DNA of 64,000 bases from Macrostomum lignano. Its lineage: Eukaryota. Made by a program: the position numbers and the translations under genes. The stretch spans positions 31,938 through 95,937 of the forward strand of contig NIVC01003480.1 in the NCBI GenBank assembly GCA_002269645.1. The letters are read 5' to 3'. Positions 31,626 through 47,744 of the stretch are shown here, piece by piece (within the stretch, counting starts at the first letter, position 1; each line of letters begins with the position of its first letter). The notes beneath the pieces are model-generated. The model was not told the DNA's origin, made no database searches, and worked only from the letters and a program-made list of their open reading frames with translations.

Positions 31626-34048
31626 ATGTCAACAATATTTGATTTCCAGGCGCGCAAGGTGTCCCAAGAGGCAGCCTGCTATCGCCTATCCCAGGTAGCT
31701 GGCTACGCGGGTTGCCGTAACGACCTGATCTACGCCTGCCATCCATCCAGTCGCCAGGCTGGCTGTCCGGACCAGCTGATTGTGTACTTTGGCGGCGATG
31801 TGCAAGACTACGTCGAATGTATGGACAGTCATGGCGACAATTGCAAATATCGACAATGGAATTTAGAAGCCACCGCCAGATTATTATTAACTAGATTTGG
31901 GCGCAACAATTCTGAAGTGTTTGTAGTTCGGCCTAAGCGAATGGAATCTGGCACGTACAGTGTGTACTCTAATTTTGTTGATAAATGGTCCGAGACTGAC
32001 GGGGCGCCCGTGTTCGACCATCCCTATCGGCCGGATGGCGGTGGGCGCGCTGTGCGGCATTTAGCTGAGCTGCTGGCTAGAGCTCGGCGTGAGCTCAGCG
32101 CTCGGCAAGCTGGAGATGAAGATGAAGAGGAGGCTGAACAGTCTGACAGTGTCCGAGTGAAGGATGAGGCCAGTGTCAGTAATAAGGTGCAGCGATTAAT
32201 TTTGGTAAGTGATGGTTTCTAATATTGAAGATAGACATAGGGATTCTCAGATTGGGATAGGGATATTTATATTGGGCATTGGGATCTTTAGAATAGAAAT
32301 TGAGATCTTTAGATTAGGGATTGGGTTCTTTATATTGGGGATTGGAATGTTTAGATTGGGGATTGAGATCTTTATACTTGGGATTGGGATCTTTAGATTG
32401 GGGATTAGGATCTTTAAAATGAAGATTAGGATCTTTAGATTAGGGACTTGGATCTTTAGATTAGGCATTTGGATCTTTAGATTGGGAATTGGGATCTTTA
32501 GATTAGGGATTGGGATATTTAGATTGATTATTGGGATCTTTAGATTAGGGCTTGGGATCTTTATATATTGGAGATTGAGATCTTTATACTTGGGATTGGA
32601 ATCTCTATATTGGGGATCGGATCTTTAGATTGTATGTAGTAATGATATAGCAGCATTTGAAACTGGAATTCGAATATTGTTGATAAGATGGAGCACAAAG
32701 GCATCTGGGCGTAACGCTAAGCATCATGTCACGTGTTTGCTTCCCCAACTGTGATGAAATCCCTACAGATCGGATTCAGCAAAGGCTGCGTCCCATTAAA
32801 CCAGCTGGTACGCGAGTTGAGCCACGATAAATCCTCTGGCCTGTTGCCGGGCCTGTCGGCCATCTACTGGCTGGACGGTGGGCACGCCGGCAGGTCGGAC
32901 ACCTGGCTGACCGATCCGTCCGATTTGACCAGCTTGACTAATCTCAGAGTGCGAGCGTACGCTACGCCGTATCAGGTGATTGGCAACGTCTATTTTCTTT
33001 TCAGTTGTTTTCTGTTTCATAGATAGATAGATAGATAGATAGATAGATAGATAGATAGATAGATAGATAGATAGATAGATAGATAGATAGATAGATAGAT
33101 AGATAGATAGATAGATAAATAGACAGATAGATAGATAGATAGATAGATAGATAGATAGATAGATAGATAGATAGATAGATAGATAGATAGATAGATAGAT
33201 AGATAGATAGATAGATAGATAGATAGATAAATAGACAGATAGATAGATAGATAGATAGATAGATAGATAGATAGATAGATAGATAGATAGATAGATAGAT
33301 AGATAGATAGATAGATAGATAGATAAATAGACAGATAGATAGATAGATAGATAGATAGATAGATAGATAGATAAATAGACAGATAGATAGATAGATAGAT
33401 AGATAGATAGATAGATAGATAGATAGATAGATAGATAGATAGATAGATAGATAGATAAATAGACAGATAGATAGATAGATAGATAAATAGACAGATAGAT
33501 AGATAGATAGATAGATAGATAGATAGATAGATAGATAGATAGATAGATAGATAGATAGATAGATAGATAGATAAATAGACAGATAGATAGATAGATAGAT
33601 AGATAGATAGATAGATAGATAGATAGATAGATAGATAGATAGATAAATAGACAGATAGATAGATAGATAGATAAATAGACAGATAGATAGATAGATAGAT
33701 AGATAGATAGATAGATAGATAGATAGATAGATAGATAGATAGATAGATAGATAGATAGATAGATAGATAGATAAATAGACAGATTGATTGCCATAGATTG
33801 CCATAGACATAAGCTCAGTGATAGTACTCGACAAGTCTGACTTAAAGAACTGTTTCTACTTATCCTTCTTGGCACAGGTTCGAGATTCCAACAGACCGTG
33901 GATAGGTCGCGAGTTCGAATCTTTTCTAGCGGACTGCTCAGCTCCGCCAGTTTCTTGTACAGATCTGCGCGGCGGGGTGCTCTGTCAAGAGTCAGCAGCG
34001 TCGCTTGATGCACATTTTCGCTTGTTGGAGGTCTTTCCTGTTGATTGA
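31626..34048 (+). CDS. C2orf69: C2orf69/UPF0565 homolog (alpha/beta-hydrolase-like), about 318 aa
   Basis: Exons 31626-32204, 32769-32975, 33878-34048. Motifs VYFGGDVQDY, WNLEATARLL..RF, IGFSKGCVPLNQL (GxSxG), YWLDGGH, TPYQVRD..RPWIG, HFRLLEVF. Start uncertain (alternative acceptor at 31649). Confidence 0.88.
32240..33790. repeat. 21-bp repeat and (GATA)n microsatellite in C2orf69 introns
   Basis: TTTAGATTAGGGATTGGGATC-like (32240-32625); (GATA)n with GATAAATAGACA variants (33020-33790). Confidence 0.93.
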
Positions 34049-34489
34049 TTTATTTTCTGTCTGAATGATATTGATTGATTAATTGCCTGTCTGATTAATT
34101 GATTTATAGCTCATCTAGCAACTGATTAGTTAACTGATTGGCTTCTGAAAGCATTTTTGTTCACACGTGCTGCTTAACCACTATGTTAAATAAAATAACG
34201 ACATTGCATATTCGGTACATTTTACTTTTAGTAGTTCAATATGTCTTTGGTAGGTAAAGTGTGATAATTGTGTAATTTCTTTTTAGGTAATTTTATAATG
34301 AGATTTTTCATGCCGTTAGCTTGTTTGTATTAATTATGTCAGTCTCAATTTTTTCATTTCTATAGCACTATGCTCACTTTGTTTAATAGTAAATCTAAAG
34401 TATACTGACTTAATATCTAACTTTCTTTAAAAGTAATTTTGGAGAGTTATAAAATTGATTAGGTCAGATAAACTTATACATGTGTAGAT

Positions 34490-47400: not shown

Positions 47401-47744
47401 GCCGGGGCCTGTCTGGCCGCGTAGCTCTGATCACGGACGGCCGCTTCTCTGGCGCCACGAAGGGTTTTGTAGTTGGTCACGTGACCCCAGAGTCAGCTGT
47501 CGGCGGGCCAATCGGCGCGCTTCGCACCGGCGATCAAATTGAAATCGACGGTCCCGGCCGACAAATTAATGTCCGACTGGCCGAGTCCGAACTGGCCGCC
47601 CGACTGTCCGAGGCGGCTACGGTGGCTGCGGAGGCTTCGGCCGAGGCGAAAGCGGACCCACCGGGAGGATCTCGCACCTCCGTGTTGGCGAAGTACAGAC
47701 GGCTGGTCAGACAGGCTGATGAAGGAGCCATTGTGGTTTCGTGA
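44465..47744 (+). CDS. ilvD: Dihydroxy-acid dehydratase (IlvD/Edd family, 2Fe-2S-type motifs), about 579 aa, with one apparent 1-nt frameshift
   Basis: Exons 44465-45025, 45175-45750, 45973-46229, 47400-47744 total 1739 nt, one short of a multiple of 3. Motifs [68 protein letters not shown]. Confidence 0.93.
45050..47375. repeat. Repeats in the three ilvD introns
   Basis: (CTGT)n at 45050-45147; three 57-bp CAGCCAATCAGC units (45760, 45817, 45874); about 36-bp GAATAAGCCTCTCTCCCCCCAATCTACGCACACAC (46425-47375). Confidence 0.9.

Follow-up and report, generated by a model that had tools for sequence, protein, structure and literature searches.

In the flatworm Macrostomum lignano, a single 35-nucleotide (nt) spliced leader (SL), CGGTCTCTTACTGCGAAGACTCAATTTATTGCATG, is trans-spliced to the transcripts of ~30% of the genes, and ~15% of the genes are in operons (PMC8629364; PMC5730564), so that the SL trans-splicing which a preliminary description of the DNA studied here had stated for flatworms in general holds for this very species. 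The spacers of M. lignano operons are inflated by repeats; once the repeats are subtracted, the lengths of those between trans-spliced genes peak at ~100 bp, and the published operon definition sets a cut-off at 1 kb and permits a first gene that is not itself trans-spliced (PMC8629364). We analyzed a window of 64,000 nt, that is, the whole stretch of M. lignano DNA under study (assembly Mlig_3_7, GCA_002269645.1), which runs to the end of contig NIVC01003480.1 (contig coordinate = window coordinate + 31937). Its + strand carries a cluster of five genes, C2orf69, FKBP12, a DNAJC27-like gene, UQCRQ, and ilvD, the last of which is of a bacterial type. We suggest that the distal part of this cluster is most likely an SL-resolved operon, consisting of UQCRQ-ilvD and probably of DNAJC27-UQCRQ-ilvD.

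SL operons with repeat-filled spacers have already been published for this species and this assembly, and the operon aspect alone is ordinary. Like the described M. lignano operons (Wudarski et al. 2017, PMC5730564; Ustyantsev & Berezikov 2021, PMC8629364), the locus consists of same-strand neighbors served by a single 35-nt SL that ends in AUG, its acceptors at C2orf69 and UQCRQ follow the YTNCAG pattern, and its repeat-inflated spacers fall below 1 kb once the repeats are subtracted. Unlike typical ones, it has adjusted spacers of 290-510 nt, in the upper tail of the distribution and not at the ~100-bp mode, its five genes are unusually many, and its last gene is bacterial-type. A precedent for this last feature is the RFC140-flp operon of Hydra (Dana et al. 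2012, PMC3273482), where, likewise in an animal, a gene gained by horizontal transfer occupies the downstream position in an SL operon, with the operon supplying transcription and the SL supplying the 5' end. The Hydra operon was demonstrated experimentally, whereas we infer co-transcription for M. lignano, and the donor proposed for flp is a unicellular organism, whereas the nearest relatives of the M. lignano ilvD are bacterial. A related proposal was made for Paulinella (PMC6053224). Capture of a foreign gene by an operon has thus been shown once, in Hydra, and our literature search found no such case for flatworms or other bilaterians.

Parasitic flatworms likewise have SL-resolved polycistrons that mix housekeeping genes, for example a trematode pair of cytochrome b-c1 subunit 7 and enolase; these operons are diagnosed by chimeric gene models that an SL acceptor divides in two, and some of their spacers measure several kb (PMC12582326). 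The trematode partner is subunit 7 (UQCRB), whereas the M. lignano locus has subunit 8 (UQCRQ), and the median intercistronic distance of 99 bp in Schistosoma mansoni lies below the 290-510 nt found here (PMC12582326). No conservation of the M. lignano gene pairs came to light in these worms, and no search was aimed at it. Compared with the bacterial and plant IlvD proteins (TIGR00110), the M. lignano one differs in being encoded in an animal nucleus, by a gene with three spliceosomal introns.

As first described, the five genes are co-directional: all gene models are on the + strand, each with a Pfam match, and neither the gene models nor the GenBank annotation place an opposite-strand or other gene between them. 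The five-gene cluster is also present on two further contigs of the assembly, NIVC01001283.1 (loci L002/L006) and NIVC01001730.1 (locus L005), and the copies show 93-100% identity to the window through the cluster. The gene order, ilvD included, is preserved on the three contigs, which supports the operon reading. As the copies are nearly identical (93-100% in the spacers, 94-100% in the introns), their conservation is uninformative as a test for a promoter or for constraint. Nor is the shared orientation of the five genes special, because all recognizable genes of the window are on the + strand and none was recognized on the - strand across the 64 kb. Overall, the best-supported picture is that of a head-to-tail cluster of M. 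lignano genes whose mRNAs take their 5' ends by SL trans-splicing.

We judged the use of SL acceptors from annotation boundaries (GenBank, and the older ML2 annotation in UniProt) and from one polishing artefact, which concerns UQCRQ. In the three-copy alignment, NIVC01001283 reads AATTCCAG/CAACTCGG (the slash marks the splice junction), in perfect agreement with the published YTNCAG acceptor motif, whereas the window and NIVC01001730 read AATGCATG/CAACTCGG, with TGCATG, the final six bases of the SL, directly before the junction. On the window contig, the GenBank coding sequence (CDS) of UQCRQ is 5'-partial and begins with 'TRSRC...' at 42662, indicating a transcript start at 42660-42662. Mlig_3_7 was polished by Pilon with RNA-seq as well as genomic reads (PMC5730564), and we infer that abundant SL-UQCRQ reads overwrote the reference acceptor, leaving an assembly artefact that fossilizes SL addition at 42659/42660. 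Trans-splicing of UQCRQ to the SL at this junction is hence indirectly shown. The acceptor initially assigned to UQCRQ, at 42702, did not hold, as the supported site lies 43 nt upstream of it. The reading frames agree with 42659 and not with 42702: via 42702, the AUG of the SL would open an out-of-frame open reading frame (ORF) of 81 codons, whereas via 42659 it would open an upstream ORF of 17 codons, which terminates ahead of the main AUG. With its TGCATG scar at the GenBank transcript start, UQCRQ qualifies as an SL trans-spliced downstream gene, which the published definition of an operon calls for. Trans-spliced genes with high expression may carry similar scars throughout the genome, and these would erase acceptors from the reference. 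Between the UQCRQ SL site and the ATG, at about 42682-42690, lies the sequence CAGCCAATC.

For ilvD, two ML2 models share one boundary. UniProt A0A1I8IYW7 begins with 'TAMSSDS', which corresponds exactly to 44459, and A0A1I8ISI1, a 632-amino-acid (aa) protein named 'Cytochrome b-c1 complex subunit 8', joins residues 1-51 of UQCRQ (42728-42880) to the same 'TAMSSDS' from 44459 onward. Since both models start or splice at 44459, they support 44458, the ilvD acceptor picked out in the preliminary description, as a used 3' splice site. The AUG of an SL joined there would be in frame (ATG/ACC GCC ATG), and 44458/44459 is consistent with an SL site of ilvD, although a cis acceptor could give the same boundary. 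The chimeric UQCRQ::ilvD model hints at co-transcription; in flatworm genomics, chimeric models that are split by an SL acceptor are taken as mis-annotated operons, including some with spacers of several kb (PMC12582326).

For C2orf69, the gene at the head of the supposed operon, SL trans-splicing is likewise indirectly shown, at 31649/31650. The GenBank C2orf69 proteins on all three contigs are 'partial' and begin with ARKV... or RKV..., 0-3 nt after the TTTGATTTCCAG that ends at 31649, and at this junction the AUG of the SL would be in frame (M-ARKVSQ...). The junction sits 24 nt inside the CDS first drawn for C2orf69, whose start ATG at 31626 is missing in a paralogous copy. About 70 nt upstream of this acceptor, the similarity between the contigs breaks at a 3.6-kb indel (window 31250-31577 vs L006 6321-9927), and further upstream, beyond the indel, the paralogous contigs are 81-91% identical in patches only. 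Hence, the C2orf69 promoter does not correspond to any obviously conserved proximal sequence.

At FKBP12 and DNAJC27, the GenBank CDSs are complete, and the annotation is therefore uninformative on an SL boundary; the three-copy alignment contains no SL scars at either gene. Of the two candidate acceptors of FKBP12, use of 35858 would place the AUG of the SL at the head of an 84-codon out-of-frame ORF, and use of 35865 would give a 6-codon upstream ORF. For DNAJC27, 37394 is a better motif match than the 37561 proposed earlier, both being candidates. Like those of FKBP12, the DNAJC27 candidates do not differ among the three copies. The FKBP12-DNAJC27 spacer contains a minisatellite in which every 32-bp unit has a pyrimidine tract and then CAG, CTCTTCCGCTACCCTCAG, and this spacer, if transcribed, would present 19 tandem acceptor-like sites of this form. 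The DNAJC27-like protein is identical to GenBank PAA51223.1 (BOX15_Mlig031150g6). The intact FKBP12 ORF is unannotated in GenBank on NIVC01003480.1, and the identical protein is annotated on NIVC01001283.1.

YAG trinucleotides as such are uninformative as acceptors. They are exactly where they were first described, at 35858, 37561, 42702, and 44458 (31, 18, 25, and 6 nt before the respective ATGs), but this has little evidential value, because, of all + strand ATGs of the window, 36%, 56%, and 67% are preceded by a YAG at a distance of up to 10, 20, and 31 nt, respectively, which puts the YAG-ATG pairing at chance level. Suffix words of the SL (TTGCATG and similar) occurred at chance frequency only. 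Longer SL-like stretches upstream of FKBP12 and UQCRQ, considered as a relic SL RNA gene or retrocopy, were rejected by Smith-Waterman alignment of the SL plus GTAAG against both strands, with a top score of 24 as compared to 21-31 for shuffled sequence.

The spacers of the cluster are long but repeat-filled. The stop-to-ATG gaps measure, in gene order, 1842, 1364, 2337, and 1465 nt, each with one large minisatellite, and shrink to 627-746 nt without the arrays, in agreement with the 1.4-2.3 kb and ~0.5-0.75 kb given before; all five AATAAA signals are likewise exactly where they had been placed (Table 1). For a measure closer to the intercistronic region, we took the distance from AATAAA + 25 nt to the next acceptor and subtracted the arrays found by Tandem Repeats Finder (TRF), leaving RepeatMasker-type repeats in. 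With the TRF arrays alone subtracted, all four adjusted spacers (290-510 nt) stay below the 1-kb limit published for operons. No second copy of the unique spacer parts occurs within the window.

Table 1. Coordinates of the features of the window (strand as given; spacer lengths measured as described in the text).
Feature	Position	Strand	Remarks
C2orf69 gene	31650(31626)-32204, 32769-32975, 33878-34048	+	Pfam PF10561, E 2.7e-58; = GenBank PAA51222.1
FKBP12 gene, single exon	35890-36216	+	108 aa; Pfam PF00254, E 3.3e-37
DNAJC27-like gene	37580-37657, 37765-37847, 38569-38809, 39445-39728, 40256-40391	+	273 aa; Pfam Ras + DnaJ
UQCRQ gene, single exon	42728-43000	+	90 aa; Pfam PF02939, E 1.1e-23
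ilvD (dihydroxy-acid dehydratase)	44465-45025, 45175-45750, 45973-46229, 47400-47744	+	PF00920 + PF24877
C2orf69 SL acceptor, indirectly shown	31643-31649	+	TTTCCAG; exon from 31650; matches published motif YTNCAG
FKBP12 candidate acceptors	35852-35865	+	CTCCCAG ending at 35858, TTACCAG ending at 35865; identical in three copies
DNAJC27 candidate acceptor	37388-37394	+	TTTCCAG; sole YTNCAG motif in the FKBP12-DNAJC27 spacer
UQCRQ SL site, indirectly shown	42654-42659	+	TGCATG in window vs TTCCAG on paralogous contig; exon from 42660
ilvD acceptor	44452-44458	+	CGTCCAG; exon from 44459, 6 nt before ATG; identical in three copies
AATAAA	34189-34194	+	141 nt past C2orf69 stop
AATAAA	36459-36464	+	243 nt past FKBP12 stop
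AATAAA	40544-40549	+	153 nt past DNAJC27 stop
AATAAA	43224-43229	+	224 nt past UQCRQ stop
AATAAA	48073-48078	+	329 nt past ilvD stop
23-bp minisatellite, 53 copies	34583-35797		C2orf69-FKBP12 spacer
32-bp minisatellite, 19 copies	36740-37359		FKBP12-DNAJC27 spacer
26-bp minisatellite, 62 copies	41002-42624		DNAJC27-UQCRQ spacer
30-bp minisatellite, 24 copies	43571-44289		UQCRQ-ilvD spacer
C2orf69 to FKBP12 spacer			raw 1644 nt; adjusted 429 nt
FKBP12 to DNAJC27 spacer			raw 910-1077 nt; adjusted 290-457 nt
DNAJC27 to UQCRQ spacer			raw 2090 nt; adjusted 467 nt
UQCRQ to ilvD spacer			raw 1209 nt; adjusted 490 nt
ABC transporter (ABC_membrane + ABC_tran)	2800-4750	+	
Long interspersed nuclear element (LINE)-like fragment with RNase H	10100-11650	+	
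Cys-loop ligand-gated channel gene	16450-19200	+	

The last three genes, at least, would fit the published working definition of an M. lignano operon. Under this definition, SL splicing of ilvD would make DNAJC27-UQCRQ-ilvD an operon, and the inclusion of FKBP12 and C2orf69 would further require SL splicing of both FKBP12 and DNAJC27. The gene names add a further hint. In Mlig_3_7, a common prefix marks the genes that belong to one transcriptional unit (for example, Mlig030697.g1/.g2; PMC5730564), and the DNAJC27 genes on the three contigs are named Mlig031150.g1,.g3, and.g6, a numbering which suggests that DNAJC27 shares a transcriptional unit with a neighbor. It is compatible with three units of two genes each, in which FKBP12, as judged from the contig orientation, would come second. 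We put the probability that UQCRQ and ilvD are co-transcribed at about 0.5; this estimate and that for a single five-gene unit are nested and are not expected to sum to one.

According to the operon reading of the distal genes, RNA polymerase II would read through the poly(A) signal of the upstream gene and the minisatellite spacer (at UQCRQ, its AATAAA and the 30-bp array), the upstream mRNA would be cleaved and polyadenylated at its own AATAAA, which would release the UQCRQ mRNA, and the 35-nt SL would be spliced to the next acceptor, at 42659/42660 for UQCRQ and 44458/44459 for ilvD, to yield a capped downstream mRNA. The SL itself would supply an in-frame AUG to ilvD and C2orf69.

A number of observations weigh against this reading. 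The donor used by the chimeric model, GTGCCG at 42881, is weak and is the last in-phase GT in UQCRQ, just the kind of site that ab initio prediction would select. In length, the adjusted spacers exceed the ~100-bp mode 3-5 times, with raw values of 0.9-2.1 kb, and either measure exceeds the ~100-nt intercistronic region of the general operon criterion. As for ilvD, GenBank has no spliced model on any of the three contigs, which, as judged from the GenBank models, suggests that its RNA is much rarer than that of UQCRQ. The exact FKBP12, UQCRQ, and DNAJC27 proteins were found in genome records only, with no Logan or transcriptome source. With regard to the names, the.gN numbers could count isoforms instead of neighboring genes, and the C2orf69 prefixes (Mlig025176/Mlig021085) differ from the Mlig031150 of DNAJC27; the authors of the operon survey caution that repeat-rich spacers lead to breaks in transcriptional units (PMC8629364). 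The supplementary tables of Grudniewska 2018, Wudarski 2017, and Grudniewska 2016 held only an FKBP1B-like neoblast-enriched transcript, which is not assignable to this locus.

Several of these points also count in favor of a reading without any operon, in which same-strand genes would each have their own promoter, within or ahead of the respective spacer, and the SL would serve only to trim the outron of each. This alternative is a serious one, which we would hold at rather less than even odds. In its favor, ~60% of M. lignano's SL-trans-spliced genes are outside operons (PMC8629364), each of the five genes has its own AATAAA, the + orientation extends to all recognizable genes of the window, including a neuronal channel gene 10 kb upstream, and ilvD seems poorly covered by the RNA-based annotation, whereas there was enough UQCRQ RNA to overwrite the assembly; the long spacers and the differing unit names of C2orf69 and DNAJC27 point the same way. 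On the other hand, every adjusted spacer is below the 1-kb threshold, the chimeric UQCRQ::ilvD model exists, and the Mlig031150 numbering suggests a multi-gene unit. Furthermore, only 35 nt of unique sequence separate the minisatellite from the UQCRQ acceptor, so that any private promoter of UQCRQ would need to be located within or ahead of a 1.6-kb repeat, which argues against the absence of an operon.

The opposite extension, put forward in the preliminary description, has all five genes on one transcript from a single promoter before C2orf69, with the SL added at 35858, 37561, 42702, and 44458. What speaks for the distal operon also counts for this larger one, all four spacers are within the published distance limit, and a trans-spliced C2orf69 has an outron and hence a start somewhere upstream. 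We nevertheless consider it unlikely: 75% of M. lignano operons have two genes and 18% three, five-gene operons being rare (PMC8629364), the C2orf69 unit name is not that of DNAJC27, the sites at FKBP12 and DNAJC27 are candidates only, and the UQCRQ site is 42659, the SL AUG via 42702 leading into the 81-codon out-of-frame ORF. The initial SL-operon proposal is supported in part, by the mechanism in this species, the indirect acceptor evidence at C2orf69, UQCRQ, and ilvD, and the sub-1-kb distances, whereas acceptor 42702 did not hold and the unit names speak against a single unit.

The last gene of the cluster is, by its sequence, a true dihydroxy-acid dehydratase. Its full-length product scored 654 bits against the TIGR00110 equivalog cut-off of 618.15 bits, 729.5 bits against 644 for NF002068, and 502-541 bits against solved dihydroxy-acid dehydratase structures (e.g., PDB 6nte, 5ze4, and 6ovt), and it has the motifs CDK, PGxCxGxxTANTM, and TDGRFSG, which we take to be those of this family. 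An N-terminal extension of only ~10 residues contains no obvious targeting peptide. The spliced product is 96% identical to an M. lignano UniProt entry, and the next matches are at 53-58%. Among the best 120 matches outside Macrostomum, no name was eukaryotic and every named one was bacterial (Opitutales, Puniceicoccaceae, other Verrucomicrobiota, Kiritimatiellaceae, and others); the best plant structure reached 509 bits, compared to 664 bits for the top of these 120. In this ranking by score alone, with fungal and algal sequences outside the sample, a bacterial donor is likely, though not proven, and the early impression of a foreign-looking gene is supported by its bacterial nearest relatives. 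Our literature search found no report of ilvD, or of its horizontal transfer, in Macrostomum.

Several features show ilvD to be a resident of the flatworm genome. It lies downstream of UQCRQ on three contigs, confirming its linkage to host genes, and its structure is of host type: the three introns, with lengths of 149, 222, and 1170 nt, are GT-AG introns and carry flatworm-type micro- and minisatellites. Its exons have a G+C content of 64-68%, as compared to 52-60% for the neighboring genes. In the window, ilvD lacks one C in the run 45545-45548, a frameshift that had been overlooked; the NIVC01001283 copy lacks a different single base (CDS nt 594; L002 about 12058), whereas the NIVC01001730 copy is intact (579 aa) and no frameshift is present in the ML2 model of the window-type allele. 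On these grounds, we attribute both deletions to errors in the long-read assembly. Of the 10 substitutions among the ilvD copies, eight fall on third codon positions (binomial P about 0.003 vs the expected 1/3), which points to purifying selection since the duplication. ilvD was therefore already present when the locus was duplicated and is functional; its three introns were gained after its acquisition. GenBank has ilvD only as an unspliced ORF of 297 aa (44465-45358, reading into intron 1), on this contig only. Intron 2 is 100% identical among the three copies and contains, at 45760-45940, 3-4 copies of a ~57-bp unit with a CCAAT-box-like CCAGCCAATCAGCGCTCTCC, which the CAGCCAATC upstream of UQCRQ resembles. 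That ilvD is contamination, a mis-assembly, or a decaying pseudogene, as the two deletions, the truncated GenBank ORF, and the elevated G+C content might suggest, is highly improbable and was rejected, given its linkage on three separate contigs to flanking flatworm genes and minisatellites, its GT-AG introns, the intact third copy and frameshift-free ML2 model, the nature of the deletions (single bases, each in one copy, the window's in a homopolymer run of a PacBio assembly), the third-position bias, and a score above the TIGR00110 equivalog cut-off.

Across the window, Rfam and tRNA scans revealed no known RNA gene. A 28-bp minisatellite in intron 2 of DNAJC27 (37891-38540) recurs ~30 kb upstream (about 7385-7912), and both arrays have the same repeat-derived ORF translations; its presence at two places indicates a dispersed minisatellite family.

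A bolder reading, which we hold to be less likely than not, is that the flatworm took up a bacterial dihydroxy-acid dehydratase gene as the final cistron of a housekeeping operon and has retained it, under purifying selection, through the later duplication of the locus. On this reading, ilvD would depend on read-through from UQCRQ for its transcription and on the SL for its cap, with translation starting at the in-frame AUG of the SL. By analogy with the flp gene of Hydra (PMC3273482), a promoterless foreign gene may gain expression by landing in an operon, and, if UQCRQ and ilvD share a pre-mRNA, this would be a route for the immediate expression of a promoterless bacterial gene in an animal.

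To our knowledge, the branched-chain amino-acid pathway is normally lacking in animals, and an intact, selected dihydroxy-acid dehydratase in an animal raises the question of its substrate. As transgenesis works in M. lignano, the idea of operon capture is directly testable and, if true, the locus would provide a bilaterian case of the domestication of a foreign gene by operon capture.

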